A stretch of DNA of 64,000 nt from Histomonas meleagridis 2922-C6/04-290x (GCA_020184695.1 JAANOX010000195.1:50862-114861); one strand, 5' to 3'. Shown: positions 11,517 to 60,720, counted from the stretch's first letter. Numbers and translations are program-made. The notes: a model not told the origin generated them from the sequence alone.

Positions 11517-12353
11517 TTAAACATCTCTTGAGACGAGTGCACTTGTATTTAAGGACTCATATCCTTGCTTTCTCTTTCGCAACATAACAACTAATACAAT
11601 GACCACAATAATGATTACGACAGCACCAATGCATAAGCCAACTAATAACCATGGGAAAGATTTTGGATTTTCCAACTCTGGAAGGAATTCAAGTGCCGCA
11701 GTTAGATTGGAGACGACATGGTAAGGCTCGAAACGTGATGAGACACCTTCACCTGCACGATTAACCCAAATCTTTGTCCAGTTCATTTCGTTAGCAGGAA
11801 ATATATCTGCCCAAATACCTTGAGCAATGTGTGTATGACCGTTGTGATCAAAGTCAAGTTTTTGATGTACATATCTGAAAAATTGGAGATTTGGCTTGAA
11901 AGCTTTAGATTCGTCTGCTAAAACAGCCATATCAAGGACATCACCAAGAGCTTTTCTGTTGAAATCCATAAGTGAGGTAACAGAATTTGACATGGCAACA
12001 AGTGTATATCCTCTCCTTTTCATTTCTTTAAGGGCATCAATGACTTCTGGGAATGGCTTGTATTCATTGTATGTTTGTATTATTCGATCATAAGATTTTT
12101 CGAAACAATCAGAATTCATGTTTAAATCTGTCCAGAAAAGAGCTTTTTTAAGTTTTTGATCCCAATCTGCATATTCTTCACCCCATACAACGCGTCCTTC
12201 ACAATTTGAATATGTTGTTGCGGCTAATTCAGGATCCAAACCATTTTCACGTGCAATTGCTTTAATTGTTTGACTTTTTGTGCTAATGTTTAAAAGCGTT
12301 CCATATATATCAAATGTGACATAATGAATAAGTAAAAAGGAGAAGATAATCAT
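11517..12353 (-). CDS. HAD-superfamily hydrolase, tandem paralog with C-terminal TM anchor
   Basis: TFDIYGTL, MSNS, FKP, HIAQGIWADI; clearly paralogous to 10618..11316; TM WLLVGLCIGAVVIIIVVIVLVVML then RKRK. Confidence 0.88.
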   Translation of the reverse strand: MIIFSFLLIHYVTFDIYGTLLNISTKSQTIKAIARENGLDPELAATTYSNCEGRVVWGEEYADWDQKLKKALFWTDLNMNSDCFEKSYDRIIQTYNEYKPFPEVIDALKEMKRRGYTLVAMSNSVTSLMDFNRKALGDVLDMAVLADESKAFKPNLQFFRYVHQKLDFDHNGHTHIAQGIWADIFPANEMNWTKIWVNRAGEGVSSRFEPYHVVSNLTAALEFLPELENPKSFPWLLVGLCIGAVVIIIVVIVLVVMLRKRKQGYESLNTSALVSRDV

Positions 12354-17700: not shown

Positions 17701-20700
17701 TAAGAATTAAATTTTTTATATAAGTTAATACATAATTATTCACTGGTACTTTTAATGAATAAATCATTGTTCTAAACTGAGTTTTAGTCATAGGTTTAAA
17801 TGCCTTAAGAAATGATTTTAATTGGAAAAGTGTTTGTAAATTAGTAATTTCTGATATCCATTGTGATATTGTAGTGAATGGTGTACCAAAAGGTTCTGAT
17901 ATTGGTTCATTTTTATTTTTATTTAATATTAATTGATATAATTCTTCAAAAATCTTATTTTCAATTGTAAATTCTTGATATAAATTAATCGATTGAACTG
18001 CTTTTTGATAAAATGGTAATAAATCTTTAAAATGATTCGATGCTAAAATCGCTTTAGGTGATAATGTCTTTAATACTGTTGGCGTTGATTCATTTTGTAT
18101 TATTAATAATCGTGCTAATGATGATATTAATTGATAAAAAAACTTTAGAAGTTGTATGTTTTTAGTTTGATTTTCTTTAAGTTCATTTGATAAAATATTT
18201 TTAATCCTTGCAATTAAATCAAATTCAATTGGATTTATTTCTAAATCTACATTTTTCACATATTCTTCAATCGTTTCATGATCAAATCCAACTGAAAATA
18301 CTTGATCAGGAAATCGTTCATATACTGTTAAAATCATTTGAAGATTTACTTCAAATAAACGATTAGAAAAATTTTTATTTAGATGTAAACGTTTACATGC
18401 GTAAGTTAAAAAATATAATGAACGTTCAAATACATTAATTTTATTAAATATATTAAATGTAATATTAGTTAATATTAAGTTACAATATTGATCATTATTA
18501 TAATCAGCGAAATGTGTAATTTGAAATATTTTATTAAATTTATTGGGAACTGTTTTATAAAACATTTGTGTACGAGTTAAATAATGAATCATTAAATTCG
18601 TAAATTCTTCTGATGATATTATTTCATTTTTTGTATTTAAAAGTATATTACATACATGTAACATATGTGAAAATGAATGAAATTTTTTATCATTGATACC
18701 ATAGATAATAGATAATGCATAAGATGAAGGACATGAATAAATAAATGGACATTTTTGAAAATCAGGAATATTAACATTTTTAATAAAACCTGCAGAAGTT
18801 ATAATCGTATTTAAAAAATATGCTTGAAATGCTGTAAGATTATTTAAATCATCAAAATTAACATTAAATTGATATTCTGTTTCAAAAGGAAATGTTTTAA
18901 ATTTATCAATCATTAAATGATAAATAAATGCTTTTTCATATGCATTATTATATTGTAATGTTGGAATTATATTATAAATAATTTTTTGGACATTTGGTTC
19001 AAGTTTTTTAACAAATCCTAAAAAATATATCAAAAAAATCGGATGATGAAATATATTTGTACATGAAATTATTAATGGTAAAATATTATATAATAAATTA
19101 TTTAATAATTCTGAATCAATTGTATAAAAATTTATGAAATTCATTGGTAAAAATATTTTTTGGAATCCTAATAATACAGAAGGTGTATAAGTTAAAATTT
19201 TATCATTAGATTGTGTTAACTTTTTTATTAATTCAATGGAAATATTTTGTAACAATAAAATATTTATATCATCTTCTTTAAATTTATCAATAGAATTACT
19301 AATAATAGATAAACATCTTGATTTTAAATAATTTAAATCAATTTTTGGTATTTTCTTAATAAAATCGATAAAATTATCCAAATTTTTATATAACTTGTTT
19401 AAACATATATCTCTAAATTTAGGTAATTTAATATCAAAAATTAAATTAAATAATAAAATTATATATTCGAAATTATTTGATTTCTTTAAATATATAATAA
19501 ATATATTTAATACCATTTCAGGCATTGAATCAACAAATATATTAATCGGTAAACTTAAAGGTATTCTAGAAGATTGTGGTGAAATAGTTAAATCAATAGA
19601 AGCTGAGATACAACTTGTTAAATTAATTTTTTCATCTTTTTCATGAATATTTTTAATGAACAAAAACAATTCTGTTGATAAAGATTTGATAAAATTTGAA
19701 TTTTGTTGTGATAATTTACATAAAAAAGCTTGAATCCATAAAACAATTTCATGTGTAGGTATAACTTTAGAATGTGAAAACAAAAATCGAAATATTATTA
19801 TATCATCACATTGACAAGGATTTTGTGGCATTCTATTCGAAGTACCGAAAATATTTAATATTTCATTTGGTAAAGATTGAATTATTTTATTTTCATCAAG
19901 TAATTTATCAATAACTTTAATAAAATAATTAATAAAAGATCTAAATTTCTCTGATTTTAATGTTTTAAATAATTTCTCCCAGATTAAAGTTGATTGATTA
20001 TTCGAAGGCATTTTAATTAAAAATCGAGCTAATAATTTTAAGATGAATTTAGCATTATTAATCGGTATTAATGAAGGTTCTTGATACGTAATATCTTTAA
20101 ATAATATTGATATTTCTTTTGGTATCTTTTCTATCTTTAAATTAGTAAATGTATTTATTAATTTCTCACAAATTTCATATGAATTAGGTATGTTACTATA
20201 ATCTTGATATAACATAAATTGAAATCGATGATAATATTTATAAGTTTGTTCATTCTTAAAAAATTCTGTAAAAAAGCGATTAAATTGATTTTGATTTACA
20301 TATTCGATATGAAGTTCTTTTAAGCCCCAAATTGCTAATTTACGAATTTTCCCAATAAATTGTGTAACTCTCGAATGGAAATGTGAAACAATTTCACGGA
20401 AAATTTCATCATTTTTTGATAAATGTTCAATTTTACTAAATATCTTTGTTTGAATAACATCTTTCACATGCTCAAAATCATACATTGAAGCTTGAAACAA
20501 TGAAGGAATTATAGAACTATATATAGAAGATAAAGGAATTATAGGTAAAATATCATTAATTAATGAAACACTTGTTGATATTAATTTACGATAACTACAT
20601 ATCATTTTACAATGTTCTAAAAAATCAACATAATCATCAATATAATTAATAGGATTTGATTTTTCCCTTAAGTAATGATGTTTTAAAACTAAATATATGT

Positions 20701-23257
20701 ATAAAACATTTTGATTTAATTGTGTTTCAATATTATCATCAAATAAATCAGGTGAATTCTTTACTAAATATTCAGTAATATCATGTACTAAATTACATGT
20801 TAAAGCAGGATAAAATGTTAATTTATTAATTAATTTTAATAAACATGAAAATAATAATTTATAATCTTCAGTAACAACATTTTCTTTTTTCTTTATCGAA
20901 TTAAATAAACTATCACAATTAATATAATATCCATCGATTTCTATACTTTGATGTTTAAGTTTTGGCTCGCTTAAAACTAATGAATAACATGAAGTAGAAT
21001 CAGGAATTTTATTTAAAAGGACATTTGTATATCTTAAATCTTCTTTATTAAGTTTTAATATTGAAGAAGAAATCTTCGCAATTAATTGGAATTGATTTGT
21101 TCTTTTAATGTTATTAATCCATTGTGGTAAATTAGAAGATTCATGTCTATAAAATGATTGTAATGAAGTTTTCATATGTTCATTAGATTCTAAAGCAGGA
21201 AAAAATAATTGTGTCCATTGATCATAAATTCCAGATTTTTCTTGTTCTTGAATTTTTACAAAAGGAAATATAATAATTGATAATAATGAAGTTAATTCTT
21301 CTAATTTCGGTTCTTCTTGTAATACACGTAAAACAGAATGAAATGAAAATTTTGTTGTTCCTAAATTACTATAAAAATATGATAACTTTTGTGGCTTATT
21401 ATTTTGATGTATTATAAAAAATATATTTAAAACTAACTCAATTAAAACATGATCTTTCGATACCATTGCTTTTAATATAAATCGATATAATGCATTACAT
21501 AATTGATTATTTTGATTAATTTGTAATGATAATTTATTATCAATAAAAGTCTTAATAAAAACTTGTCGTGTAAATAAAAACAAACTCGTATGTGATACTG
21601 GTTGATAAATTTTATCGAATTTTGTTGAAATCGTATTAAAAAATGCCAAATAATATGGAGTAGGATCCTTTAATTCCATTAATAACTTTTGATTTACACT
21701 TATATGATAACTATGATAAGGTTTATCAGGTAATAATAAATATAACTTCTCATATAAAAAAGGTTCTAATATCGCATTAGGTAACGTAGTAATTAACTTA
21801 ACAGAAAATTCAAATAATGATGAAACTTTATCAACGAATTCTTTGGTTGATAAGTTCTTAAATATAATATCAGATAAAATCGGAAATTGTGCTTGTGCTC
21901 TCATTTTTCCAACATTATCTAAAAGAAATGCAATATATTTTGCTACTCTTGATAAAATCGACATTATATAATATTCTGGTTTTGTAGGTACATCCATTGT
22001 TGTAAAAAGCACAAATAATTTCATCAAGCCCATGTTCGCATTTGCCCAAACGTCAAATTCAAATTCTGTTTTAGGATTAGTAAAGTCGACCATTTCATAA
22101 TCTAATTGTATCATTTGGAATGCGCCTGTTACTTGTTCCAAAAGATCACGTTGTAACCCGGGAGTAGCTTTAAATAATGCTGCTGAAACCATTGATTGCA
22201 TTAATACACTTGCCGGTATATTTAAATTTGACATATGAAAATGTCCAATCAATGGCATTATATAAGGTAATAAATATGATAAATTTGTATATGTTTTATT
22301 TTGAATACTTAACCATCCATGTAATGATCGTAAATAAAGAAATACTTTATGACATTTATTTAATGGTGGAAACATAAACGCTTGCATATTCTCCGTGATG
22401 TTTGAGATACAATAATTTGTGATTTCTTGCGTGCGTTGTTGTTCTTTAAAAATTAATAAACAACATAATAATGAAAAATAATTGGAATAAATATAATAAT
22501 TATTCGCGTCATTAGAGATTTGATTCCGAAATTTTAAAACAAGTGATAACGATTTAGAACTTAGAAATTTAACGGATTCTTCAAGTCGTGAGATTAAATG
22601 AAATAATTTACCCGTTAAAAGTTCATGTTGATGTGTGTAAAATGATGAATTACGTGCACGAAGGAGAATATCAGTAAATGATATAAGCGTATCAAGAAGT
22701 GTAGGTAAAACAGATTTGACTTTTTGATCAAATATAAATAATGTAGATCTGCATGTACGTGAAAAGGTTAATAAAAACTTGATGTCACATCCCGGTAAAT
22801 CATCATAATTTTTGGGGATTTTATTGAGAATAATTTTGAAAAAATCTTCTACATTTTCTTGTGTAGAAGACTTAAAGGAGGAATAAAAATCTAATAACGC
22901 AACATATGTAAGAGATAATACAGATCCTTTTGTTTGACGCAGATAAATAAACAATATGGTTTCGATTTGTTGTAATAAATCAAAACTTTTGATTAGTGTA
23001 GGTCTTAAAAAACGAATAAATTGTATGACCTTTTTTTGATATGATTTGTTTTCTTCATTTTCAAGAAAGTTATTTAATAATTGAAGAAAATATTCGATGA
23101 GTAAATTATAATTTGGAATAAGTTCTGAGTCAAGGGAATTTACAAGGTAAGTACTAATTTGATCAAAAAGAGAGGGTGTAAGTGTTATGTTGGATTTTGG
23201 ATTATGTAAAGATTTTAGGAAAATCCCAATTTCATCCATTGAATCTAATCCAACCAT
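14789..23257 (-). CDS. Large PIKK-family HEAT protein, TRRAP/Tra1-like pseudokinase
   Basis: 2822-aa ORF; C-terminal RQSFMSNLGLFSVLRFVF resembles the TRRAP pseudokinase helix; FATC-like end ENSHNELPYAYSWI; no catalytic DRH/DFG seen. Confidence 0.62.
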   Translation of the reverse strand: MVGLDSMDEIGIFLKSLHNPKSNITLTPSLFDQISTYLVNSLDSELIPNYNLLIEYFLQLLNNFLENEENKSYQKKVIQFIRFLRPTLIKSFDLLQQIETILFIYLRQTKGSVLSLTYVALLDFYSSFKSSTQENVEDFFKIILNKIPKNYDDLPGCDIKFLLTFSRTCRSTLFIFDQKVKSVLPTLLDTLISFTDILLRARNSSFYTHQHELLTGKLFHLISRLEESVKFLSSKSLSLVLKFRNQISNDANNYYIYSNYFSLLCCLLIFKEQQRTQEITNYCISNITENMQAFMFPPLNKCHKVFLYLRSLHGWLSIQNKTYTNLSYLLPYIMPLIGHFHMSNLNIPASVLMQSMVSAALFKATPGLQRDLLEQVTGAFQMIQLDYEMVDFTNPKTEFEFDVWANANMGLMKLFVLFTTMDVPTKPEYYIMSILSRVAKYIAFLLDNVGKMRAQAQFPILSDIIFKNLSTKEFVDKVSSLFEFSVKLITTLPNAILEPFLYEKLYLLLPDKPYHSYHISVNQKLLMELKDPTPYYLAFFNTISTKFDKIYQPVSHTSLFLFTRQVFIKTFIDNKLSLQINQNNQLCNALYRFILKAMVSKDHVLIELVLNIFFIIHQNNKPQKLSYFYSNLGTTKFSFHSVLRVLQEEPKLEELTSLLSIIIFPFVKIQEQEKSGIYDQWTQLFFPALESNEHMKTSLQSFYRHESSNLPQWINNIKRTNQFQLIAKISSSILKLNKEDLRYTNVLLNKIPDSTSCYSLVLSEPKLKHQSIEIDGYYINCDSLFNSIKKKENVVTEDYKLLFSCLLKLINKLTFYPALTCNLVHDITEYLVKNSPDLFDDNIETQLNQNVLYIYLVLKHHYLREKSNPINYIDDYVDFLEHCKMICSYRKLISTSVSLINDILPIIPLSSIYSSIIPSLFQASMYDFEHVKDVIQTKIFSKIEHLSKNDEIFREIVSHFHSRVTQFIGKIRKLAIWGLKELHIEYVNQNQFNRFFTEFFKNEQTYKYYHRFQFMLYQDYSNIPNSYEICEKLINTFTNLKIEKIPKEISILFKDITYQEPSLIPINNAKFILKLLARFLIKMPSNNQSTLIWEKLFKTLKSEKFRSFINYFIKVIDKLLDENKIIQSLPNEILNIFGTSNRMPQNPCQCDDIIIFRFLFSHSKVIPTHEIVLWIQAFLCKLSQQNSNFIKSLSTELFLFIKNIHEKDEKINLTSCISASIDLTISPQSSRIPLSLPINIFVDSMPEMVLNIFIIYLKKSNNFEYIILLFNLIFDIKLPKFRDICLNKLYKNLDNFIDFIKKIPKIDLNYLKSRCLSIISNSIDKFKEDDINILLLQNISIELIKKLTQSNDKILTYTPSVLLGFQKIFLPMNFINFYTIDSELLNNLLYNILPLIISCTNIFHHPIFLIYFLGFVKKLEPNVQKIIYNIIPTLQYNNAYEKAFIYHLMIDKFKTFPFETEYQFNVNFDDLNNLTAFQAYFLNTIITSAGFIKNVNIPDFQKCPFIYSCPSSYALSIIYGINDKKFHSFSHMLHVCNILLNTKNEIISSEEFTNLMIHYLTRTQMFYKTVPNKFNKIFQITHFADYNNDQYCNLILTNITFNIFNKINVFERSLYFLTYACKRLHLNKNFSNRLFEVNLQMILTVYERFPDQVFSVGFDHETIEEYVKNVDLEINPIEFDLIARIKNILSNELKENQTKNIQLLKFFYQLISSLARLLIIQNESTPTVLKTLSPKAILASNHFKDLLPFYQKAVQSINLYQEFTIENKIFEELYQLILNKNKNEPISEPFGTPFTTISQWISEITNLQTLFQLKSFLKAFKPMTKTQFRTMIYSLKVPVNNYVLTYIKNLILNEFQFENQDEEMFCRNNLAISNIFITQSNDFINDCWNFNWGQYNEFYHLVIFLRLLLPNNLVEHILTFHETDLIETVSIVISNLNERSKINRFFEYYINVYPNTGLSYCIWQTKSRILGLPLCQNTLIKNMEYLNSRNYIDDSLGLLKTKFKNLYIASSYLQLTHYRAAKSYFLNEMDKDYNTYFYSLIELMKISINLSLPFTTDLYEKFVTRKPNSNNNEFKLPFSLFFQQSSLNIPTILPNQTNNPPDLTTYLSQTYLPYILYIALNDEFNVALQILQQRSLPNSATISTKSKYFWMKALDMQTALSSMLSLRISFCQRIEGSNITNIGNIGGNIPNDPSSTQNIKQQSQEVLINNLNVFIRLLLKSGATHSALKQYRNISQNKPLHVKKHILPSILLFLQNSLVYAQTKWFQNLQSQCNLILGNYQSFPTFYKNGKLSKQWYFVVINLIRKFPQCINIKTIFKTIQGQLILSTDSATLFITLAISIVKQNNAYHKFFETDFLNNFITDPFLPFFLRWLQPIFEICKAIPSEFLFLLYKSHPSLFLITIKHIKNSNLNTEFHQIDEFLLRIKNSKENHTQSDLQKIFNWIDDIEEDIKTLDNNAINHIKFYKSLYKNKYDINNYNELKQKAIFLKDNQPILKTNNTKIQLSYQAGLKFPAINSNIIHAYVQSDGVNETQLKFITVRGELKQIMLVSSRLYQLTYREYLFILGITKYIEKCQSSKLRSHFMFYPMTYLIHPFLSLVHSSSLRTQITMINDNISLLFLKAYKKDIHKDSSPLSTKNKIKIKTDRNYIVNFFLNRCDGSKANFLFMRQSFMSNLGLFSVLRFVFNSSLNVLPNLCFFDDCMKTCVPGFIKSDFNKIPQIPVTKALMKLTPKYILNGTFSTTWNVIPLAFERNIDYIRVLLGSLLNENEIIGKIINRIELMAPIEAEETDKTDDPFPFALLEHIIDCAENSHNELPYAYSWI

Positions 23258-25706: not shown

Positions 25707-25710
<4 letters not shown>

Positions 25711-25745
<35 letters not shown>
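25711..25745. repeat. (TA)n microsatellite
   Basis: About 17 uninterrupted TA units. Confidence 0.95.
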
Positions 25746-28324: not shown

Positions 28325-29662
28325 ATGCTAAATACTCTTAAAAACTTGGTTTTTGGTTTAACTGAAGAAAATGTTAATGTAACTGTTCATCAAACAATGG
28401 ATTTGTTTGATTCAAATTTCCCATGTTCGTTTAATTTTCTTTTAAGTATAATAATTTTATCATCATTCTCCACTCGAGTAGATGAAAGTTCTATTTACTT
28501 ACGCTATTTACAAGAAATTCAAAAAAAGCAAGAAATGCTTAAAAATAGTTTTAGAATCATTCATATATTTGGAATTTTCCTATCTGAAATAATGAACCAA
28601 GAAGCACTCTACCTTCTTGATAAAATGTTTGAGCAAAATTTAATTGATATAAAACCCCTCAGAAAAAAATCTTTCTATTTTTCTCATTATCAAGGAATTC
28701 GTATTCTGTTCGATTCTTCAGAGGGTTTCGTCCTGGACTTCTGCAAAGATCGCACCAAACTTTCAAAGAATGATTGGGAACTTCATAAGAAATATGTTAA
28801 AGAAGGAGTTAATCCAAATGAAATTGCGAAAATAATTCGAAATGATGAAATCGAAAAGCTTCAAGAAATCTCATCACACAATAATTTTGATTATAATCAA
28901 ACAATTAAACCATCACTTTATGAAAGATGCTCATTTGTTAATCAGAAAAATGTTACATTAATTGATTATGCAGCATTTTTTTCTTCAGTTAAATGTTTTA
29001 AATATTTACTTATGAATAATGCAAGTGTAGAAAATACAGGCAAATATGCAGTTGCAGGTGGAAATGAAGAAATCATTCATTTATGTGAACAAAATCATTC
29101 ATCATTTGAAGATGCATGTGAAGCTGCAATTAAATATCATCGAAATGATATATTTAAATATATTTATGAAAACAAATTAGAAAAATTGAATAATCATAGT
29201 GAACAAGAAGACCCTTTAACTGGCAATGCAAATCAAGCTCCAAATTCATTTAATAATGGAAATTTAAATCCAGGTTTAAACGGTAATGGAAATCAACACA
29301 TACCATTGTTCAATAGCATAGGATTATTAAATAGATTTAAAGATAATATTTCCTCGAAAATGAATTTAAATTTTTTGGGATATTTTTGTATTAATAATGC
29401 AAATTATGAAATTCTTTCATTTTTGGAAGATAGTGGAATGAAACCTGATGAAAATTTTATTTATAAAATAGCAAGTATTGGCGACTTATATCATGTTAAA
29501 TACTTTCTTAAAAATGTTCAAATTCCGAAAGATATTTTATTATTCTCATCAAAATCAGGAAATATTGAACTTGTAAAATTTTGTCTTGAACAAGAAGGCA
29601 TTGATTTAGATGCAAGATACAAAATTAATGGAAATTGTTTAAATTATTTGATACTCCGTTAA
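28325..29662 (+). CDS. DUF3447-type ankyrin protein 1, N-terminal ORF (coding probably continues through the interrupted array to ~32500)
   Basis: IIRNDEIEKLQ, LIDYAAFFSSVKCFKYLL, AVAGGNEEIIHLCEQ, AIKYHRNDIFKYI; ORF leaves frame in the first spacer (29621-29652). Confidence 0.88.
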   Translation: MLNTLKNLVFGLTEENVNVTVHQTMDLFDSNFPCSFNFLLSIIILSSFSTRVDESSIYLRYLQEIQKKQEMLKNSFRIIHIFGIFLSEIMNQEALYLLDKMFEQNLIDIKPLRKKSFYFSHYQGIRILFDSSEGFVLDFCKDRTKLSKNDWELHKKYVKEGVNPNEIAKIIRNDEIEKLQEISSHNNFDYNQTIKPSLYERCSFVNQKNVTLIDYAAFFSSVKCFKYLLMNNASVENTGKYAVAGGNEEIIHLCEQNHSSFEDACEAAIKYHRNDIFKYIYENKLEKLNNHSEQEDPLTGNANQAPNSFNNGNLNPGLNGNGNQHIPLFNSIGLLNRFKDNISSKMNLNFLGYFCINNANYEILSFLEDSGMKPDENFIYKIASIGDLYHVKYFLKNVQIPKDILLFSSKSGNIELVKFCLEQEGIDLDARYKINGNCLNYLILR

Positions 29663-32425
29663 TATGTGCTACTGAAAGAGGATACACTGAAATCGTTAAA
29701 TTACTTCTTGAACAAGAAGGAATTGATGTTAATGCAAACATTTCTTTGTTTTGTTTAATATTTATTTTAATAATTATGGGATATTTCAAAATAATATTTG
29801 GAAATTATTTAAATTATTTAATACAGCGCTTATTTATGCATCTGATTTTGGTTATATAGAAATCGTTAAATTACTTCTTAAACAAGAAAGAATTGATGTT
29901 AATGCTAAAGATATTTATTTGTTCTATTTAAAATTTATTTTAATAAATTAATATTTCAAAATAATACTTGGAAATTATATAAAATATTTAATACAGCACT
30001 TATTTATGCATCTGAAAATGGTCATATAGAAATAGTTAAATTACTTCTTAAACAAGAAGGAATTGATGTTAATGCTAAAGATATTTATTTGTTTTATTTA
30101 TAATTTATTTAAATATTTTGAAATTTCAAAATAATATTTGGAAATTATTTAAATTATTTTGTAATGCACTTATGACCGCATCAGAAAATGGACATATAGA
30201 AATAGTTAAATTACTTCTTGAACAAGAAGGAATTGATGTTAATGCAAACATTTCTTTGTTTTGTTTAATATTTATTTTAATAATTTTGGGATATTTCAAA
30301 ATAATATTTGGAAATTATTTAAAATATTTAATACATCACTTATATTAGCATCTGAAAATGGACATATAGAAATAGTTAAATTACTTCTTAAACAAGAAAG
30401 AATTGATATTAATGCTAAAAACATTTATTTATTTTACTTAGAATTTATTTTAATAATTTTGGATTTCAAAATAATATTTGGAAATTATTTAAATTATTTG
30501 ATACAGCACTTATATTAGCATCTGCTAATGGTTATACAGAAATAGTACAATTACTTTTTGAACAAGAAGGAATTGATATTAATGCTAAAGATATTTATTT
30601 ATTTTACTTAGAATTTATTTAAATATTTTGAAATTTCAAAATAATATTTGGAAATTATTTAAATTATTTGATACAGCACTTATATTAGCATCTGCAAATG
30701 ATTATACAGAAATAGTTAAATTGCTTCTTAAACAAGAAGGAATTGATGTTAATGCAAACATTTCTTTGTTTTGTTTAATATTTATTTTAATAATTTTGGG
30801 ATATTTTAAAATAATATTTGGAAATTATTTTAAATATTTAATACAGCACTTATGAATGCATCTGAAAATGGTCATATAGAAATAGTACAATTACTTCTTA
30901 AACAAGAAGGAATTGATATTAATGCTAAAGATATTTATTTATTTTACTTAGAATTTATTATAATAATTTGATATTTCAAAATAATATTTGGAAATTATTT
31001 AAATTATTTAATACAGCACTTATATTAGCATCTGAAAATGGTCATATAGAAATAGTTAAATTACTTCTTAAACAAGAAGGAATTGATATTAATGCTAAAG
31101 ATATTTATTTGTTTTATTTATAATTTATTTTAATAATTTGATATTTCAAAATAATATTTGGAAATTATTTAAAATATTTAATACAGCACTTATATTAGCA
31201 TCTGCAAATGATTATACAGAAATAGTTAAATTGCTTCTTAAACAAGAAGGAATTGATGTTAATGCAAACATTTCTTTGTTTTGTTTAATATTTATTTTAA
31301 TAATTTTGGGATATTTTAAAATAATATTTGGAAATTATTTAAATTATTTAATACAGCGCTTATTTATGCATCTAAAAATGTTCATATAGAAATAGTACAA
31401 TTACTTCTTAAACAAGAAGGAATTGATGTTAATGCTAAAGATATTTATTTATTTTACTTAGAATTTATTTTAATAATTTGATATTTCAAAATAATATTTG
31501 GAAATTATTTAAAATATTTAATACAGCACTTATATTAGCATCTGCAAATGATTATACAGAAATAGTTAAATTGCTTCTTGAACAAGAAGGAATTGATATT
31601 AATGCCAAAGATAATATTTATTTTAATAATTTTGGGATATTTTAAAATAATTGGAAATTATTTAAATTATTTAATACAGCACTTATGCTTGCATCAGAAA
31701 ATGGACATATAGAAATAGTTAAATTACTTCTTAAACAAGAAGGAATTGATATTAATGCTAAAGATATTTATTTGTTCTATTTAAAATTTATTTAAATATT
31801 TTGAAATTTCAAAATAATATTCGGAAATTATTGAAATGATTTGATACAGCACTTATTTTAGCATCTGAAAATGGTCATATAGAAATAGTTAAATTACTTC
31901 TTAAACAAGAAGGAATTGATGTTAATGCTAAAGATATTTATTTGTTTTATTTATAATTTATTTAAATATTTTGAAATTTCAAAATAATATTTGGAAATTA
32001 TTTAAATTATTTGATACAGCACTTATTTTAGCATCTGATGAAGGTCATATGGAAATAGTAAACTTACTTCTTAAACAAGAAGGAATTGATATTTTTACTG
32101 AGAATATTTGTTTTTCTAATTTTGGGTTTATTTTCTTGATATGATATACCAAAGTAGTATTTAAAGTTTATTTAAATTATTTCAGCATTCATTTTAGCAT
32201 CTAAAAATAGGCGTATAGAAATAGTTAAATTACTTTTTGAACAAAAAGGAATTGATATTATTACTAAAAATATTTATTTGTTTTAATAATTTGCTGTTTC
32301 AGGGTAATATTTGGAAATTATTAAAAATATTTAACATAGTTCTTACATTAGCAGTTTTTAGTTTTCACAAAGAAGTTGTTAAATTACTTGTTGAAAATAA
32401 AGAAATCAATTTGTTAACAGCATTT
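29621..32425 (+). repeat. Ankyrin tandem array 1: 17 stop-free ~90-nt modules separated by frame-breaking AT-rich spacers, period 170 nt
   Basis: Module starts (Thr position) counted at 29653, 29823, 29993, 30163, 30333, 30503, 30673, 30843, 31013, 31183, 31353, 31523, 31676, 31846, 32016, 32182, 32336; consensus TALIxASENGHIEIVKLLLKQEGIDxNAKD. Confidence 0.95.
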
Positions 32426-32503
32426 CAAATTGCATTGAAAATAGGCATGAAAGATATTATTGATATTTTGAATAATATAGATAGAATTGATAAAAGTAAA
32501 TAA

Positions 32504-33472: not shown

Positions 33473-35278
33473 ATGAAGGATTCTTCGATTCTAGATGTTT
33501 GTGGAAAATTTATGTGGGATAAATCAACAGAAACATATCTAAAATCCCACTTAAATTCAAGCACTCATCTTTTGAATCTAGCAACAAATCATATTGGTCC
33601 TGGTAGTGCAGATATTATTACATCAATGATGAAGTACGAATCCAGTAATCTTGAAGAACTCGTTTTTGATCAATGCCGTCTTACAGTCGAATCTTCAATG
33701 AAAATATTCGATGCGCTTCCTCAATCCAAAGTTACATATCTTTCAATGAACCAAAATGTGCTTACTCTTGAAGCATGTCAAAAATTTGCAGAAATACTGA
33801 ATCAAGATCCTGTCCTTCAATTTGTAAGTTTTGCTGGATGTGATATTCCTGCTGATGGTTGTGTAGCCATTGCTAAATCACTTCCCAATACAACTCATCT
33901 CGAAATTCTTATACTTGATTCCAACTGTATATTTGACAAAGGAGTCATTAAAATTGCCAAATATCTATCACGTTCATCACTTAAAGAGTTATCAATTAGT
34001 GATAATCATGTTTGGAAAGAAGGCACCAATTCTTTACTCAAAGCCATTATTGATTCACCTAATGTTGTTTCATTAGATATTTCCTATAACATTGTTGATT
34101 TAGCATATTTAGCAGAATGTCTTTCATCCTCATCAATTCGCAATCTTTCAATTACCGGGTGTAAAGTCAGCAAATCACAAATATTCCTATTCCTTGAAAG
34201 TCTAGGTCGTTCTAACCTTCATACATTAATTGTTGAAGGAATGAACCTTGAGTCACAACTTCCCATCTCATGGCCGCACGTTAAGGACACGTTATGGGCC
34301 GATGGCCCACTTTTTATGAAGTTTACATCGATGATTAATTCGAGTAAAACCCTTGATGATGTTAGACTTGGTTTTATCGATTTAAATTGTATTAGCATTT
34401 TTAAGAAAGCCATTTCCAAAGAAGTGATTATCTCTATGAATGATTTTGGGCGAACTGAAAATACGTGGGTCATACATTTACCCGAATTTAATGTCGAATC
34501 ACCACTTCCTATTTTACAATGGAATTCGCCCATTCGAAAAGATGAATCTATTGTGTTACTTGATATTTTTAAAAACACAACATTCCAAGGAGAACCATTA
34601 GATTCATTAAGTGTTACTAATTCTGATTTAAATGATCAAACACTTCAAGAACTATTCAGTAATTTCCATGGAATTAATCTTCGGGTTTTAGATATGTCCA
34701 ATAATTCTTTTAGTGATAATTCTGTTGAATCCATTCTTAAGTATTTAAATGAAACAAACATTGAACATTTAATACTTAATAAAACAAATATCACAGAAGT
34801 TGGTTACAAAATACTTTTTTCGAATTTGGAAAAGATTCCTTATACAATTGTATTCTCATTTGAAACACTAAATAATGATGAAGCTTTTACACATGAATTC
34901 TTTAATGACTTAGCAAATTTGATCGAAAATGATCCGCAACTTGAAGAAATGACAATAAATGGATTTGTCACATCAAGCGATTTATTATTAATATTTGCAA
35001 AAATGAAAAAGAATTCGCATCTAAAAAAGTTAATTATCGAAACAGAAATCCCAGATGAGTATAAAGTACCAAACCCTCAGATATTACCTGAGGTACAGGA
35101 AGGTTATAATGCTATGGTGGATGCTTTATATCATGCGCTGTGTGATGAGGATTCGATGTGCGTGTTAAACACTTTTAAGTTCCAAATGTTGACTTCAGTT
35201 TACTTGTTTAGTGATGCGATTTTGAACCTTTGGGGAGAAATTGAAACTAAATTGGAAAGTAATAATGAATTGGAATAA
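33473..35278 (+). CDS. RNI-like leucine-rich repeat protein
   Basis: Repeated LxxLxLxxNxI units (LNLATNHIG, LILDSNCIFDKG, LSISDNHVWKEG, LDISYN, LDMSNN). Confidence 0.85.
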   Translation: MKDSSILDVCGKFMWDKSTETYLKSHLNSSTHLLNLATNHIGPGSADIITSMMKYESSNLEELVFDQCRLTVESSMKIFDALPQSKVTYLSMNQNVLTLEACQKFAEILNQDPVLQFVSFAGCDIPADGCVAIAKSLPNTTHLEILILDSNCIFDKGVIKIAKYLSRSSLKELSISDNHVWKEGTNSLLKAIIDSPNVVSLDISYNIVDLAYLAECLSSSSIRNLSITGCKVSKSQIFLFLESLGRSNLHTLIVEGMNLESQLPISWPHVKDTLWADGPLFMKFTSMINSSKTLDDVRLGFIDLNCISIFKKAISKEVIISMNDFGRTENTWVIHLPEFNVESPLPILQWNSPIRKDESIVLLDIFKNTTFQGEPLDSLSVTNSDLNDQTLQELFSNFHGINLRVLDMSNNSFSDNSVESILKYLNETNIEHLILNKTNITEVGYKILFSNLEKIPYTIVFSFETLNNDEAFTHEFFNDLANLIENDPQLEEMTINGFVTSSDLLLIFAKMKKNSHLKKLIIETEIPDEYKVPNPQILPEVQEGYNAMVDALYHALCDEDSMCVLNTFKFQMLTSVYLFSDAILNLWGEIETKLESNNELE

Positions 35279-42476: not shown

Positions 42477-44882
42477 TTATATCCATTTGTCATCTTCCTG
42501 AATAATAAAATCATTATATTCTATATTAAAAGATTCACTTATGCTGTTACATTTTGATGAAGAAAGATGTGAATTTTTATTCGAATAATTCTTTTTACTC
42601 CTTTTAATAACAAAAATAATAATCCCTATGATCAATAGAAATGTAGCAACTGCAGAACATATAATTCCAATTAAAACACTGGTTGACATATCATGATTAA
42701 CTTGGGGTGAATTAATTTGAGTAATTGTATAAAATTCAAAATAATAATATGAAGAATATTGAAGGATAATATAATCATAAAATACAAATTCTGAGTAAAT
42801 TAAAGTGTATATTGAACTAACTAATGTATGTGAGAATGAATTTGATAAAAATGTATGGTTAATGGTTAACGTTTGAGTAATTAACAAAGAATGTGTAAAA
42901 ATTAATGAAAATGATAAAAATAAATTTGATTTCGTAAAAATATCACTTTGTGTAAATTCATTTGATTTCGTAAATGTATATGAAAATGTTTTAGATTTTG
43001 TAAATGTGATACTTTTAGTAAAAAAATCAGATTTAGTAAATGAATTACTTTGTGTAAAAACATTGGATTTTGTGAATGTAGGTGTTGGCCAAAGATATTG
43101 AGCACATCCATCAACTGTTGTTCCTTTTAATGCTTTAAGTGTTCCAAATGTAGTATCTTGATATAAATCTGATGTCATAACATATTTTATTGTAACGCCA
43201 AATGCGTTAGAATCTATATCAGTTGGGGATGTATAACCTGTGAAATAAATGCATTTTAAATTATTGCAGTAAGTAAATGCATTCTTTCCAATTGTTTTTA
43301 CATGTTCTCCAATTGTAACTATTGTCAATTTTGTACAATAGCAAAATGCAGATAATCCAATTTTTGTAACAGAATCAGGAATTGCAATGTTTTGTATTAA
43401 ACATTGATAAAAAGCATAATTTTCTATATTTAAAATTGAGTTTAAGAAATTATATGTATCATTAGAAATGGATGATGGATAACAAATAATTGAAGAATAA
43501 TTTTTATTAAATAAAATCCCATTATCATCATTTATATAATAAGTATTTTCATTAGACACTTTAATAAATTGAAGATTTTTACAATACATAAAAATACCTG
43601 GTCCAATTGAAGCTACTGATTTTGGAATAGTAATATTTTTTAATGAAGTGCATGAATGAAATGCAAAACTATCAATAGCTTTTACATTTTCTCCAATAAT
43701 CACTTTTTCGAGTGAATAACATTCTCTAAATACATATGTTTGAATTATTATAACAGAATTAGGAATTATAATATTTGTAAATGAACATCTATAAAACGAA
43801 TAAGTTTGAATTATTTGAACAGAATCTGGAATTGTAATATTTGTAGATATACACCCATTAAATGCATAGTCTCCAATTTTTGAAACTGTATTAGGGATTT
43901 CAAATGTTTTATCAGAAAGTCCAGCTGGATAGCAAATGATTATGGAATAATTTTTATCATAAAGAATTCCATTATCAGATAAATAAAATGTATTTTGATT
44001 TGATACTTGGATTTTTTGTAGTTTACTGCACCCTACAAAAGCAGTTGAAGCAATTGAATTGACAGATTTTGGAATTGAAATATTTTTTAATGAGGTGCAT
44101 GAACGAAATGCACTGGTTTCAATTGAGTTTACATCGGCTCCAATAATCACATTTTCTAATTTAGAACAATAAGCAAATGCATAAGTTCCAATTGTTATTA
44201 CTGAATTACATATTTGAGCAGAAATCAAATTTGTCCACTCATCGAAAGCACGAGAAGGAATTTCTTTAACCCCACCATCAATGATTACATGTTGAGCTGA
44301 AAACTTGTATTCATCAGAAAATTCAAGAGAAGTAGATATCGTAAGCGTATAAATTGTTGAGTTAAATGTTTCGAATGCATGTGTAAAAAAGAGAATAAAT
44401 AGAATAGGAAAAAATGTATAACTCGAATTTTCTTGAAAGTAAAAGTTTTTAAATATAAAATTTGGTAAATTAAATTTAATTTTGTATATAAACATAACTA
44501 AAATTAATATTAAAAAAGTGATTTTATATAACAAAAGAATACAATCAAACATGTATGTTTTTAGATGTTTCATCGAATTTGAATCCGAACATGCTGCCAG
44601 CAAGCAACTTAAGAATGTCGTATGATTGTAAACATTTTGTTTTAAAACACTAAAATGTGAAATTTGAATGTAGGTAGAATTTGGGTTAATGTATCTAAAC
44701 AATTCACTTTTATTTTTAGGGTTTTGATGGGATGTGCATTGGAATAATTCAGACTTCTTTTTAAAAAATGATATACTACATAAACAAACCAGAAGGAACA
44801 GATAATGTTTAATCATTTGATATATTACAATGAGAAAACTAGCTCTGTTATTGACAAAATAAAAAGCCCGCATCATATTCAA
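42477..44882 (-). CDS. BspA-like LRR_5 surface protein with F-T-x-S stalk and TM
   Basis: Many ~23-aa TpLRR units (IPxSVxxIGxxAFxxCxxL); hexapeptide stalk TFTKSN; TM VLIGIICSAVATFLLIIGIIIFVI; true start uncertain. Confidence 0.9.
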   Translation of the reverse strand: MNMMRAFYFVNNRASFLIVIYQMIKHYLFLLVCLCSISFFKKKSELFQCTSHQNPKNKSELFRYINPNSTYIQISHFSVLKQNVYNHTTFLSCLLAACSDSNSMKHLKTYMFDCILLLYKITFLILILVMFIYKIKFNLPNFIFKNFYFQENSSYTFFPILFILFFTHAFETFNSTIYTLTISTSLEFSDEYKFSAQHVIIDGGVKEIPSRAFDEWTNLISAQICNSVITIGTYAFAYCSKLENVIIGADVNSIETSAFRSCTSLKNISIPKSVNSIASTAFVGCSKLQKIQVSNQNTFYLSDNGILYDKNYSIIICYPAGLSDKTFEIPNTVSKIGDYAFNGCISTNITIPDSVQIIQTYSFYRCSFTNIIIPNSVIIIQTYVFRECYSLEKVIIGENVKAIDSFAFHSCTSLKNITIPKSVASIGPGIFMYCKNLQFIKVSNENTYYINDDNGILFNKNYSSIICYPSSISNDTYNFLNSILNIENYAFYQCLIQNIAIPDSVTKIGLSAFCYCTKLTIVTIGEHVKTIGKNAFTYCNNLKCIYFTGYTSPTDIDSNAFGVTIKYVMTSDLYQDTTFGTLKALKGTTVDGCAQYLWPTPTFTKSNVFTQSNSFTKSDFFTKSITFTKSKTFSYTFTKSNEFTQSDIFTKSNLFLSFSLIFTHSLLITQTLTINHTFLSNSFSHTLVSSIYTLIYSEFVFYDYIILQYSSYYYFEFYTITQINSPQVNHDMSTSVLIGIICSAVATFLLIIGIIIFVIKRSKKNYSNKNSHLSSSKCNSISESFNIEYNDFIIQEDDKWI

Positions 44883-57090: not shown

Positions 57091-57426
57091 TTTTAAAAAT
57101 GCTTTTTTATGATTTATAAAATGTAATAAAATATGAAAAACCTTTTTCTTTTACATATGTAATTCTCTCAAATGTTAAACATTCTGTTGGTTTCTTCGTT
57201 GACTGTTTTATTTCATTTTTTATGAAGGAAAAAATGTATGAAGAATTGTATATAAAGTTCAACATTATAATATTCAGCTTTGAAGTTTCCGTTCTTAAAA
57301 AAATGTATATTGGTGATCACGGTAATGACCACAAAATTAATTTATGAAATCTTTTTTTTTTTTTTTGTTTAAATATTCATGTTTCAAAATTTTAAAGAAT
57401 TTTATTGTTTATTAAAATGTTAGGAT

Positions 57427-57443
57427 TATATATATATATATAT
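57427..57443. repeat. (TA)n microsatellite
   Basis: About 8 TA units. Confidence 0.85.
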
Positions 57444-57520
57444 CATAAAAAAAATAAAATAGATTTTAATATGTTCTATTGCTTATATAAAAATCAGATA
57501 GAAATAATAACTTTCTTTTG

Positions 57521-59550
57521 TCAAGTAAGCATTTCGATTATTTCTGTATGACCTTCTGATAATGCCCAAATAAGTGCTGTTTCAAATAATTTAAATAATT
57601 TCCAAATATTATTTTGAAATTTTATATTATCAAAATAAATTTCAAATAAAGCAATCAAATATCTCTCACATTAATATCAATTCCTTCTTGATTAAGAAGT
57701 AATTTAACTATTTCTATATGAACATTTTTAGATGCATACATAAGTGCTGTATTAAATAATTTATATAATTTCCAAATATTATTTTGAAATATAAAATTAT
57801 TAACATTAATTTCGAATAAAACAAATAAATATCTTTAGCATTAATATCAATTCCTTCTTGTTCAAGAAGTAATTTAACTATTTCTGTAGAACCATTTGAA
57901 GATGCCCAAATAAGTGCTGTATCAAATAATTTAATTAATCTCCGAATATTATTTTGAAATTTTATATTATCAAAATAAATTTCAAATAAAGCAATCAAAT
58001 ATCTCTCACATTAATATCAATTCCTTCTTGATTAAGAAGTAATTTAACTATTTCTATATGAACATTTTTAGATGCATACATAAGTGCTGTATTAAATAAT
58101 TTATATAATTTCCAAATATTATTTTGAAATATAAAATTATTAACATTAATTTCGAATAAAACAAATAAATATCTTTAGCATTAATATCAATTCCTTCTTG
58201 TTCAAGAAGTAATTTAACTATTTCTGTACGACCATTTAAAGATGCAAATATAAGTGCTGTATAAAATAATTTAAATAATTTCCAAATATTATTTTGAAAT
58301 ATAAAATTATTAAAATAAATTCTAAGTAAAATAAATAAATATCTTTAGCATTAATATCAATTCCTTCTTGTTCAAGAAGTAATTTAACTATTTCTGTATG
58401 ACCATTTTTTGATGCACATATAAGTGCTGTGTAAAATAATTTAAATAATTTCCAAACATTATCATGAAATTTTAAATTATAAAAACAAAGATCAAGCAAC
58501 TCATAAAAATATTTTTATCATTAATATTAGATCCTTTTTGTTGAAGAAGCAATTTAACTACCTTTTCATGTCCATATTTAGATGCACAAATAAGTGCGGT
58601 TTTAAATAATTATATCAATTTCCAAATATTATTTTGATAAAAAATAATTTTAAAATAAACAAGAATTAATATATATAAATATCTCGAGCATTTATAAAAA
58701 TTTCTTCTTGTTTAAGAAGTAATTCGACTATATCTGCATAACCAAATTTAGATGCATAAATGAGTTCTGTTTCAAATAATTTAAATAATTTTTAAATATA
58801 ATATTGAAATTTTAAATTATTGTAGAGTATATTGTATATAATATTTAAATATTTTTAGCATTAATATAAATTCCTTCTTGTTCAAGAAGTAATTTAACCA
58901 ATTTTGCGTTACCACTTAAAACCGCACTTAAAAGAGCTGTATAAAACAATTTAAATAATTTCCAAATATTGATTTAAAATATAATATTATTGGGGTAAAT
59001 TTTATATAAAACAAATAAAAACTAACAATATTAATGTCAATATTTTCTTGTGTCAGTAGAAGTTTAACTATATCTATTTTACCACACGCAGATGCACAAA
59101 TAAGTGCTGTTTCAATTATTTTGAATAAATACCAATTTTAATATTGAAACATAATTTTATTAAAATCAATATTAAATTATTAAAATAAATATAAAATAAA
59201 ACAAACAAATATCTTTAGCATTAATATCAATTCCTTCTTGTTCTAAAAGTAATTTAACGATTTCTATATGACCTTTTTCTGATGCTAAAATAAGTGCTGT
59301 ATAAAATAATTTAAATAATTTTCAAATATTATTTTGAAATATAAAATAATTAAAATAAATATAAAATAAAACAAATAAATATCTTTACCATTAATATCAA
59401 TTCCTTCTTGTTCAAGAAGTAATTTAACTATTTCTGTATAACCATTTTTAGATGCAATTATTAGTGGAGTTCCAAATAATTCAAATAATTAATAAATCTT
59501 ATTTTAATACCCAAAATTAATGAAATAAATTTTAAACAACACAAATGAAT
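57521..59550 (-). repeat. Ankyrin tandem array 2: 12 ankyrin modules separated by frame-breaking spacers, period 170 nt
   Basis: Thr codons start (minus strand) at 59470, 59300, 59110, 58940, 58770, 58600, 58430, 58260, 58090, 57920, 57750, 57580; last module ends EIIEMLT-TGA at 57523-57521. Confidence 0.95.
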
Positions 59551-60720
59551 ATCTTTTACATTGATATCAATTACATTTTGCTCCAAAATGTAATTTACAA
59601 GTTCAATATTTCCTGATTTTGTAGCATAAATCATAATATATTTTGGAATGGGATTAAAATTAAGAAAATGTTTAATAAGAAATATATTTCCAATTTCTGC
59701 TACTTCATTTATAAGTTCATCGTTAATTTTCATTCCTTCTTTAAGTAAGAATGAGAAAATTTCAAAGTTATAATATAAAACACAAAACTTTCCTATTTCT
59801 TCTAAATTATTAATATTTTCTAATTTCTTTTCATATATATATTTAAAGATATCATTTTGATGAAAAATAATTGCTGCTTCATATGCACCTTTAAATGATG
59901 AATGATTTTGTTCACATAAATGAATTATTTCTTCATTTCCACCTGCAACTGCATGTTTGCCTGTATTATTTACATTTACATTATTTATAAGTAAATATTT
60001 AAAACATTTAACTGAAGAAAAAAATGCTGCATAATCAATTAATGAAACATTATCTTTGTTAACAAATGAGCATCTTTCATAAAGTGATGGTTTAATTTTT
60101 TGATTAAAATCAAAATTATTTTGTGATGATATTTCTTGAAGTTTTTCTATTTCATCATTTCGAATAATTTTTGCAATTTCATTCTGATTGGTTCCTTCTT
60201 CAATTAACTTCTTATGAAGTTCCCAATTGTTCTTCGAAAGTTGTTCATAATTGTCTTGAATTTCTCCCATAAAATATTCATATTTAATCTTTTTAATTTC
60301 ATCATTTGTTAAGCGATGTATAAAATATGGTTCAGTTATTTTACTTTTTGAATCTATTAAATTTTGTTTAATCATTTTCTCAATAAGAAAAAATGCTTCT
60401 TGTTTATAATTACTAAGAAGAAAATTCGCAAATGTATCAAATATTTTGAATTTGATTTTGTTGGAATTTTCGAATTTTTCAATTTCTTTTAATATAAGAA
60501 AACATATTTCATAATCATTTATATTTAGCATAAATGAAATAAATACAATTTGAACAATATAGATATTAAAGGAAATTGGATAATTTTCATCAAAATTTTG
60601 GATTATTAAATTTATTGACTGAGTGATATTTTCTTTATTAATACAAAAGATTACGTGCTTGATTGATAAAAGTGTTTCCCATTTATCTTGAAATTTTTGA
60701 TTGACATTTTTAGATTCCAT
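59461..60720 (-). CDS. DUF3447-type ankyrin protein 2, N-terminal ORF (coding probably continues to 57521)
   Basis: Same motifs as 28325..29662 (IIRNDEIEKLQ, LIDYAAFFSSVKCFKYLL, AVAGGNEEIIHLCEQ); leaves frame in spacer 59550-59471. Confidence 0.88.
   Translation of the reverse strand: MESKNVNQKFQDKWETLLSIKHVIFCINKENITQSINLIIQNFDENYPISFNIYIVQIVFISFMLNINDYEICFLILKEIEKFENSNKIKFKIFDTFANFLLSNYKQEAFFLIEKMIKQNLIDSKSKITEPYFIHRLTNDEIKKIKYEYFMGEIQDNYEQLSKNNWELHKKLIEEGTNQNEIAKIIRNDEIEKLQEISSQNNFDFNQKIKPSLYERCSFVNKDNVSLIDYAAFFSSVKCFKYLLINNVNVNNTGKHAVAGGNEEIIHLCEQNHSSFKGAYEAAIIFHQNDIFKYIYEKKLENINNLEEIGKFCVLYYNFEIFSFLLKEGMKINDELINEVAEIGNIFLIKHFLNFNPIPKYIMIYATKSGNIELVNYILEQNVIDINVKDIHLCCLKFISLILGIKIRFINYLNYLELH

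Follow-up and report, generated by a model that had tools for sequence, protein, structure and literature searches.

Here we describe an array of ankyrin-coding blocks and T-rich spacers at positions 57521-59550 (minus strand) of a window of 64,000 nucleotides (nt) from Histomonas meleagridis 2922-C6/04-290x (GCA_020184695.1 JAANOX010000195.1:50862-114861). The blocks are coding and are under purifying selection in relatives, and the spacers, most of which are exactly 80 nt in length, are non-coding. With a probability that we put at about 0.5, the array follows a layout in which each exon holds one repeat and the intervening sequences are intron-like but non-canonical; namely, it would belong to a multi-exon ankyrin gene grown by tandem duplication. 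Such a gene would run from ATG at 60720 to TGA at 57521 on the minus strand, with the array as its 3' two-thirds, and would belong to a DUF3447/ankyrin family that is confined to Histomonas-like parabasalids. Each 90-nt block would encode one ankyrin repeat minus its four-residue hairpin, and the T-rich 80-nt pieces would be intervening sequences to be removed from the transcript in the manner of introns; both the removal of the spacers from RNA and a machinery doing so are what we infer from the DNA. The array would have grown by tandem duplication of the unit of block and spacer (170 nt, lately as 340-nt pairs), from which the identical lengths of young copies would follow.

Organization of the array

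The first coding part (59551-60720, minus strand, with ATG at 60720) encodes an N-terminal domain with DUF3447 and ankyrin repeats and includes the first 90-nt block (59551-59640), while the mechanically called open reading frame (ORF), 59461-60720, continues through the first spacer as far as a TAA. When the minus strand was read in register, 11 of the 12 gaps were 80 nt and one was 100 nt, and all 12 full 90-nt blocks, i.e., 30 codons each, as well as the terminal piece were free of stops and gave ankyrin repeats on translation (TALICASKNGHTEIVKLLLEQEGIDINAKD and variants). An earlier note, made from this stretch without further data, had reported exactly 80 nt for 11 of 12 spacers and 100 nt for 59111-59210, and had also pointed out the ankyrin pattern, the synonymous codons for LLL and a clean end at TGA; all of these were found in our reading.

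In the direction of the gene, the first spacer (59471-59550; 80 nt, divergent) is followed by the block at 59381-59470 (TPLIIASKNGYTEIVKLLLEQEGIDINGKD), the second spacer (59301-59380; 80 nt), in which TGA replaces the usual TGG, and the block at 59211-59300. The third spacer (59111-59210) amounts to 100 nt, namely 80 nt and one additional 20-nt sub-repeat, and the extra 20 nt are a tandem copy of an internal 20-mer (59157-59197 with a period of 20 in Tandem Repeats Finder, TRF). LLL is encoded as TTA CTT CTT in most blocks and as CTT CTA CTG in the block that comes next (59021-59110). The following four spacers, all of 80 nt and divergent, are located at 58941-59020, 58771-58850 (without the GG of TTTGG), 58601-58680, and 58431-58510, and they are followed, respectively, by the blocks at 58851-58940, 58681-58770, 58511-58600 (beginning with ACC GCA, which leaves a border without AG), and 58341-58430 (consensus-like). 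Spacer 8 (58261-58340; 80 nt) has 96% identity to a spacer of the other array in the window (array 1, see below). The four youngest units, a duplicated 340-nt pair at 57581-58260, comprise blocks at 58171-58260, 58001-58090, 57831-57920, and 57661-57750 and spacers, each of 80 nt, at 58091-58170, 57921-58000, 57751-57830, and 57581-57660. A terminal short block (57521-57580; TALIWALSEGHTEIIEMLT) then reaches TGA at 57521-57523, a natural end of the reading frame.

TRF described 57539-59572 with a period of 170 (11.8 copies, 72% matches), but a period of 340 fitted better (77% matches). For both arrays of the window, matches were 72-80% at period 170 and 77-85% at period 340, which is the higher-order organization of a satellite; the coding constraint on part of the monomer exceeds what a plain satellite would show. 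The spacer at 57751-57830 is identical to that at 58091-58170 (100%), 57581-57660 is 95% identical to 57921-58000, and several spacers are 96% identical to those of array 1, with pairs of 95-100% identity overall within and between the arrays. The five spacers singled out in the earlier note as strongly divergent share 74-82% identity with their closest relative and have a median identity of 64-69%, compared with 40% expected from composition alone.

The same architecture in a sister gene and in relatives

A sister gene is located at 28325-32503 on the plus strand, starting with an ORF (28325-29662) for DUF3447 and ankyrin repeats, and its array 1 (29653-32503) has the same 170/340-nt organization. 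Array 1 has 16 blocks from 29653, with 13 spacers of 80 nt followed by those of 63, 76, and 64 nt; four of the 80-nt spacers are also readable as 83 nt after an 87-nt block. Its 3' end consists of contiguous C-terminal repeats with TAA at 32501-32503. The first junction (29621-29652) is 32 nt long and corresponds to the last 32 nt of a normal spacer, 48 nt being missing. In the upstream frame, this junction reads ...ARY-KINGN, a normal ankyrin hairpin, with 17 extra nt before TPL; a U_UUA_AAU heptamer is also present there (plus strand) in the right register for a -1 shift.

Relatives were examined in contigs fetched for family members, and each contig reaching past the first ORF shows the architecture of blocks and spacers, namely eight metagenomic loci (L002, L005-L009, L011, and L012) and, twice, H. 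meleagridis L001 (WSYJ01000186.1). The clear mode is 80 nt, which is found in 49/59 junctions of the window and the metagenomic relatives and in 18/31 of L001. Among the eight metagenomic loci, 25 of the 33 spacers are exactly 80 nt, and the ungapped difference, Histomonas included, is ~45%; in L002, L005, L006, L007, and L008, all spacers (14/14) have exactly this length at 55-65% mutual ungapped identity (40% from composition). Spacers are 80, 80, 81, 80, and 80 nt in L009, eight of 80 nt with one of 63 and one of 60 nt in L011, and 63, 63, 54, and 63 nt in L012. The length of the blocks, furthermore, varies by whole codons only (84, 87, 93, and 111 nt).

The gene layout is thus an N-terminal part of ~390 codons, 12-16 units of block and spacer, and a terminal block with its own stop. 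Terminal blocks of the array at 57521-59550, array 1, L002, L009, L011, and L012 depart from the repeat and reach their own stop, some of them via a short specific tail, which suggests that the arrays would be read to a natural end. The final two repeats of L011 adjoin directly through a normal four-residue hairpin (VVD-KNGF-SAI), and the first junction of L007 is only 12 nt (N-VMFE-SAL) where the paralogues have 80 nt; these spacer-free junctions add four residues to the 30 of a block, giving 34. In more distantly related members of the family, the repeats follow one another without interruption in the ordinary way (P0023, ...KDIYGLTAAH...). Because of the spacer-free junctions with a normal hairpin and the specific terminal tails, the simplest reading would be one long protein, with a removable element breaking up its repeats at the hairpin.

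L001 contains two genes, alpha and beta. Gene alpha corresponds to P0015, and its ORF is interrupted by a 249-codon ORF (11397-12146) that separates the P0015 ORF from its downstream ankyrin array and apparently truncates the gene; by eye, this ORF resembles the N-terminus of a mariner/Tc1 transposase, and it has no Pfam match. The 5' part of the alpha array is degenerate, with stops and one frameshift in the blocks just after that ORF (12686-13700). Gene beta consists of an ORF (16222-17649) and 21 blocks, none of which contains a stop (0/21), and this intact array holds spacers of 23, 26, 60, 63, and 81 nt. Array beta (L001 16222-20990) corresponds to about 1,451,400-1,456,200 of WSYJ01000186.1 (GCA_020186115.1). 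Unit lengths in the L001 arrays are 170 (14 single and one 340-nt double), 173 (four; a 93-nt block and 80 nt), 153 (three), and 116 nt (three), and 113, 150, 154, 165, 171, and 181 nt are seen once each. A stretch of 10 kb in L001 (11267-21266) has no called gene in the record used and holds the 475-codon DUF3447-type ORF at 16222-17649 as well as ~40 ankyrin blocks; the exact product of this ORF was absent from the protein collection searched. In L002, a gene for a DDE_Tnp_IS1595-type transposase (4380-5279, minus strand) is located 2.4 kb downstream of the ankyrin array. Scans of the JGI metagenomes, IMG/VR, and GTDB genomes with DNA patterns gave no matches.

Blocks are coding and spacers are not

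The earlier note had proposed the ratio of nonsynonymous to synonymous changes (dN/dS) in the blocks as a check; within the diverged arrays of relatives, the ratio is 0.26 (L006), 0.20 (L002), and 0.48 (Histomonas beta), with 0.5-0.67 synonymous differences per site, but it is 0.77 in the window, the copies of which are too young to judge. Variability of the blocks by codon position increases in the order of 2 < 1 < 3. Except for the transposon-disrupted 5' part of the Histomonas alpha array, stops were found in none of the ~90 in-array blocks examined, whereas simulated neutral change at spacer-like divergence left only 9-11% of the blocks free of stops. The blocks are therefore coding and under purifying selection in relatives. 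The spacers, in contrast, have stops in all three frames, and codon periodicity was looked for in them and not found; they are non-coding.

Anatomy of the spacers and search for splice signals

On the sense strand, the spacers are composed of 52-53% T, 31-38% A, 7-10% G, and 3-7% C. They have an internal periodicity of 20 nt (autocorrelation z = 6.5 at lag 20 and 4.7 to 11.5 at lag 40) with four degenerate 20-nt sub-repeats starting with RTTTAT, and G is concentrated at positions 1, 21, 41, and 58-59. It follows from this periodicity that 80 nt is 4 x 20 and that the forms of 100 and 60 nt are one sub-repeat off. TTTGG is located at spacer positions 55-59, i.e., TTTGG(A)A lies 21-26 nt upstream of the next block. 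The consensus can be written as RTTTATTT ... TTTCAAAATAATATTTGGAAWTTATTYAAATTATTT NNN followed by ACN, and position by position over 23 diverse spacers as RTTTATTT...TTTGGAAWTT...AAATTATTT.

As for the borders, the first base of the spacer is A in 22, T in five, and G in none of the 27 spacers tabulated in the window, and, among relatives, G in roughly one-third to one-half of the spacers (23/64 at the other loci). There is no consensus for the last two bases; the commonest end pairs are AT-AA, GT-AA, AT-AT, and GT-TG, and the first and last bases show no association that would indicate a pairing rule (p = 0.23). AG is depleted two- to five-fold in the spacers (33 observed and 72 expected; 11 and 55 in the other count). 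For canonical GT..AG introns, intervals of 76, 80, 68, 86, 35, 20, and 21 nt were tried by hand, and none gave conserved termini together with the frame in all units. The spacers do not have the trichomonad 5' motif (GTAYGT or GTWYWD), nor does the consensus of the 23 diverse spacers contain the 5' motif RTATCCTT and the branch motif TCCTTAAC of U12-type introns. RNAalifold, with which bulge-helix-bulge and paired ends were looked for, gave no conserved pairs in 23 junctions, and Rfam 15 had no matches at E <= 1 over 57400-59800. Given the absence of signals, the spacers are not members of the described classes of trichomonad introns (PMC12316389).

Constancy of the spacer length

In favor of selection on length, the 80-nt form persists in most junctions in spite of ~45% sequence difference, and an MAFFT alignment of 23 diverse junctions contained just two gap blocks of 3 nt. 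Length variants are frequent among the young copies of the window (100, 76, 64, 63, and 32 nt) and rarer in the old metagenomic ones. On the other hand, other lengths are tolerated within the intact Histomonas array, and the duplication history accounts for the uniformity in the window; namely, the equal length of young spacers is inherited because they are recent copies. Evidence that the equal length exceeds chance comes from the loci outside the window, metagenomic (25/33) and Histomonas (18/31). A low indel rate is a possible explanation of part of the constancy: in the single usable pair of samples within the clade, there were no indels and 42 substitutions. We thus consider that the persistence of the 80-nt mode suggests either mild selection on spacing or simply few indels.

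The earlier note had concluded that the length was under selection and had proposed a ruler-like processing step. The former stands in part: the mode of 80 nt across diverged lineages and the fixed distance of TTTGG speak for it, but the length is not strict, much of the uniformity in the window is due to recent duplication, and lengths are partly quantized by 20 nt (60/80/100). The ruler is not shown, there being neither a conserved RNA structure nor an Rfam family.

Proposed intron-like nature of the spacers and alternative explanations

Two further observations favor one repeat per exon with intron-like spacers. The excess of T over A follows the coding strand in both arrays of the window, which are oppositely oriented, and the gene content is that of a eukaryotic, intron-poor parabasalid (uL5, PIG-A, Vps51, an IBD of the IBP39 type, and BspA-type leucine-rich repeat (LRR) proteins). 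Several points weigh against this interpretation. GT..AG splice signals are found in none of the spacers, either in the window or in relatives; in some units, the junction L006-0 among them, AG is absent all the way from the start of the spacer to block position 15. The trichomonad 3' motif (ACTAACACACAG or TCTAAC..AACAG) is not present in the arrays, and its matches across the window are within chance. No more than two introns per gene are reported for trichomonads, in which GT/AG is strict and branch-site motifs are fused (PMC12316389), and in Histomonas no gene model exceeds a single intron (PMC8529796). Some spacers in otherwise intact arrays measure 23-32 nt, a length at or below that of the shortest intron reported in Trichomonas vaginalis (23 nt; PMC12316389). 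Neither a transcript nor a protein that joins the blocks turned up in the databases searched; for proteins, the searches comprised the family search, a profile search of 1.8 billion representatives, which was swamped by generic ankyrin proteins, a region search with P0008, and a search with the unit ORF; the profile of block and spacer matched ankyrin repeat proteins through the block part alone. Furthermore, with their dN/dS of 0.77, the two arrays of the window could be recently inactivated copies.

A more specific proposal is that Histomonas-like parabasalids might have an undescribed class of intervening sequences, many per gene and without terminal GT/AG, that would be cut at a set distance from an internal T-rich motif, i.e., with a genuine measuring step by a modified spliceosome or other machinery. 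The cues for such a distance would be TTTGGAA ~21-26 nt upstream of the 3' junction and RTTTAT at the 5' end. We put this forward as tentative and, on balance, doubtful.

Alternatively, the array may be a non-functional tandem repeat, in which the unit of a block and its 3' flank is amplified like a satellite (a 170-nt monomer and a 340-nt higher-order unit); equal lengths would then be due not to selection but to unequal crossing-over in register, a low rate of indels, and recent duplication, and the gene would end at the stop in the first spacer. The 340-nt periodicity and the spacer pairs that are identical or 95-98% identical within and between the arrays of the window are as expected, and so are the dN/dS in the window, the lack of indels against 42 substitutions between two samples, and the decay of the 5' part of the Histomonas alpha array behind the transposon-like insertion. 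Many family members, moreover, stop directly after ...KDI. In the old, diverged arrays (L002, L006, L011, and Histomonas beta), however, all blocks are open at a dN/dS of 0.2-0.5 while the spacers gain stops, and neither the specific C-terminal tails nor the change of block length by whole codons would be expected of a dead repeat. This explanation is, in our judgment, unlikely.

The blocks might instead be a silent store of cassettes, never expressed in place but kept open as donors of segments for gene conversion, which would alter the expressed last repeat(s) of the upstream ORF and thereby diversify its binding surface. The upstream ORF often ends just past the last block, and differences among blocks are mostly at a few surface positions; the conserved 3' half of the spacer and the start of the block could provide homology, and near-identical stretches are common to both arrays of the window. 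Nonetheless, spacers of diverged arrays are 55-65% identical, which is too low for homologous exchange, a single long reading frame agrees better with the terminal tails and the spacer-free junctions, and no mosaic copy at an expression site was seen. We regard a cassette store as even less probable than a dead repeat.

Finally, the ribosome might read the spacer by translational recoding, with a -1 shift per unit (80 = 3n+2), perhaps aided by missing genes for diphthamide synthesis. Parabasalids are described as lacking dph genes (PMC6143161), and frameshifting was once speculated for the 'split' genes of T. vaginalis (bioRxiv 10.64898/2026.08.31.748405). Lengths of 80, 83, 77, 32, 26, and 23 nt all require -1, a U_UUA_AAU heptamer is located at spacer positions 66-72 in the window, and a peptide recurring in the frame of the next block (LFxLFxIYFNNFxFQNNIWKLFKLF) made translation of the spacers attractive. 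The frame of the downstream block is, indeed, open in 15/25 spacers of relatives, as opposed to 7.4 expected with a column-preserving null. This excess, however, is partly a sampling bias because such ORFs had led to three of the loci, and the unbiased sample from Histomonas does not show it (5/18 and 3.6 expected).

At each junction, we asked for an upstream frame that is open until the downstream frame opens, for which an 80-nt spacer needs a -1 shift. There is no common position for the shift, since L005 needs it at spacer position 3 or earlier and L002-1 at position 72 or later. A stop-free path with a single shift is missing at 8/20 junctions of Histomonas beta and 7/12 of alpha, in L006-0, L006-5, and L007-0, and in several units of the window; L006-0 stands first among the junctions of its array, and the blocks downstream of it remain under selection. 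A frameshift at U_UUA_AAU or at the block end was rejected, given that paths are absent and the heptamer is not conserved in relatives, and the features of a programmed -1 frameshift, i.e., a conserved slippery heptamer or structure, were not found. Translation of the spacer in the frame of the next block was also ruled out by the stops, the missing codon periodicity, and the Histomonas data. A few short ORFs (P0179-P0182) join two blocks via an in-frame spacer of 54, 63, or 81 nt, but stops are present in 4/8 of the in-frame (3n) spacers. In L012 (598-1110) and L011 (1791-1853 and 2114-2173), in-frame spacers of 54, 60, and 63 nt are seen, half of which have TGA (for the conserved TGG) or TAA. 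Because of the stops in the spacers, read-through or frameshifting is excluded as a general mechanism, and recoding, already largely refuted in this way, is highly improbable. A prokaryotic array like those of clustered regularly interspaced short palindromic repeats (CRISPR) was considered as well and rejected because of the eukaryotic nature of the window, the coding capacity of the "repeats", and the mutual homology of the "spacers".

Comparison with known systems

If the spacers are intron-like, the introns of trichomonads would be among the closest comparisons; these are 50-196 nt (type A) or 23-28 nt (type B) in length (PMC12316389). Like them, the spacers are short and AT-rich, do not code for protein, and interrupt ORFs of a parabasalid with few introns, and 80 nt is within the range of type A. 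Also, with its constant distance to the 3' junction, the spacer motif is reminiscent of T. vaginalis introns, in which the branch site lies at a fixed distance from the 3' site (PMC12316389). Introns of T. vaginalis and T. stableri are, however, all GT...AG with a 5' motif of GTAYGT or GTWYWD and a 12-nt 3' motif, ACTAACACACAG, and number one or two per gene, whereas the spacers number 12 to ~20 per gene, start with A, G, or T, and have neither AG nor the 3' motif.

Arrays with one repeat per exon share with the present ones a repeat per block, a block length in multiples of three, duplication of block and spacer together, and near-identical neighbors. In animal ankyrin genes, for example, the exons for ankyrin repeats are 99 nt. 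Those arrays nonetheless have ordinary splice sites and variable intron lengths, while here a block is 30 and not 33 codons and the spacers have a sharply modal length without recognizable sites. Repeat proteins with such a layout have been reviewed (PMC1553488), and exon arrays for LRR and tetratricopeptide repeats are described in brown algae (PMC3341825).

U12-type (AT-AC) introns are reported to be absent from Trichomonas (PMC12316389). The spacers are similar to them in having A or G as the first base, and the pairs AT-AA, AT-AT, and GT-AT also occur in spacers. These three pairs are reported as rare U12-type termini, and the 3' site of U12-type introns is probably set by the distance from the branch site. 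The RTATCCTT and TCCTTAAC motifs are, however, missing in the spacers. Non-conventional introns of euglenids likewise have no conserved terminal dinucleotides, but they are defined by paired intron ends, and conserved pairing was not found in our junctions. The 'split' genes of T. vaginalis are also comparable in that adjacent ORF pieces of one protein are parted by frameshifts or stops in a parabasalid; the 2007 genome had 923 cases of frameshift, and readthrough of stops has since been documented (bioRxiv 10.64898/2026.08.31.748405). Those are, in contrast, single breaks read as mutations or readthrough, while here a conserved 80-nt element is at the same place in each repeat.

In published work, parabasalids are intron-poor, with introns numbering a few dozen per genome and no more than two per gene, all with rigid GT...ACTAACACACAG signals. 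Interruptions without signals, 4 to ~20 per gene, between blocks under selection would mean either an undescribed removal from RNA or dozens of ankyrin blocks maintained by selection for some purpose other than expression in place. Either outcome bears on the origin of introns, by tandem duplication or by intronization of repeat sequence, and on the annotation of the genomes of Histomonas, a poultry pathogen.

Gene family and genomic context

Both upstream ORFs in the window match DUF3447 (PF11929) with 37.7 and 36.8 bits, above the cut-off of 26.9. That of the array at 57521-59550 (59461-60720, minus strand) has Pfam matches to PF11929 (2e-9) and PF12796 (3.5e-7); read as 59464-60720, it matches the Ank_2, Ank_4, and Ank profiles and hence belongs to the ankyrin repeat proteins. 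Its family comprises P0001-P0016, among which the closest named relative is P0015 of H. meleagridis, and the other matches are from metagenome assemblies of the gut type. Small ORFs with a single block in relatives also have Pfam Ank matches.

The genome of H. meleagridis has a G+C content of 28% and few predicted introns (PMC8529796). In our survey of ORFs and Pfam matches, the window is AT-rich, eukaryotic, and of the parabasalid type, gene-dense and apparently without introns, and it encodes ribosomal proteins uL5 and uL14, PIG-A, Vps51, actin, a HECT ligase, BspA-type LRR proteins, and a transcription-initiator DNA-binding domain, IBD (PF10416). The IBD is in the ORF at 496-1215 on the plus strand (9e-18), a domain known from the Trichomonas Inr-binding protein IBP39 and thus a useful lineage marker for the window. 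Genes for BspA-type and other LRR proteins are located at 4701-6671 (plus), 42477-44882 (minus), and 33473-35278 (plus), the first of which contains 36-nt tandem repeats at 5288-5382 and 6078-6173. An uninterrupted ORF of 2822 codons (14789-23257, minus strand) occupies the region of the window that is richest in AT (20-23% G+C), and its single Pfam match is EFR3 armadillo, below the threshold. An intergenic (AT)18 microsatellite is located at 25710-25745 and a T17 run at 57350-57366.

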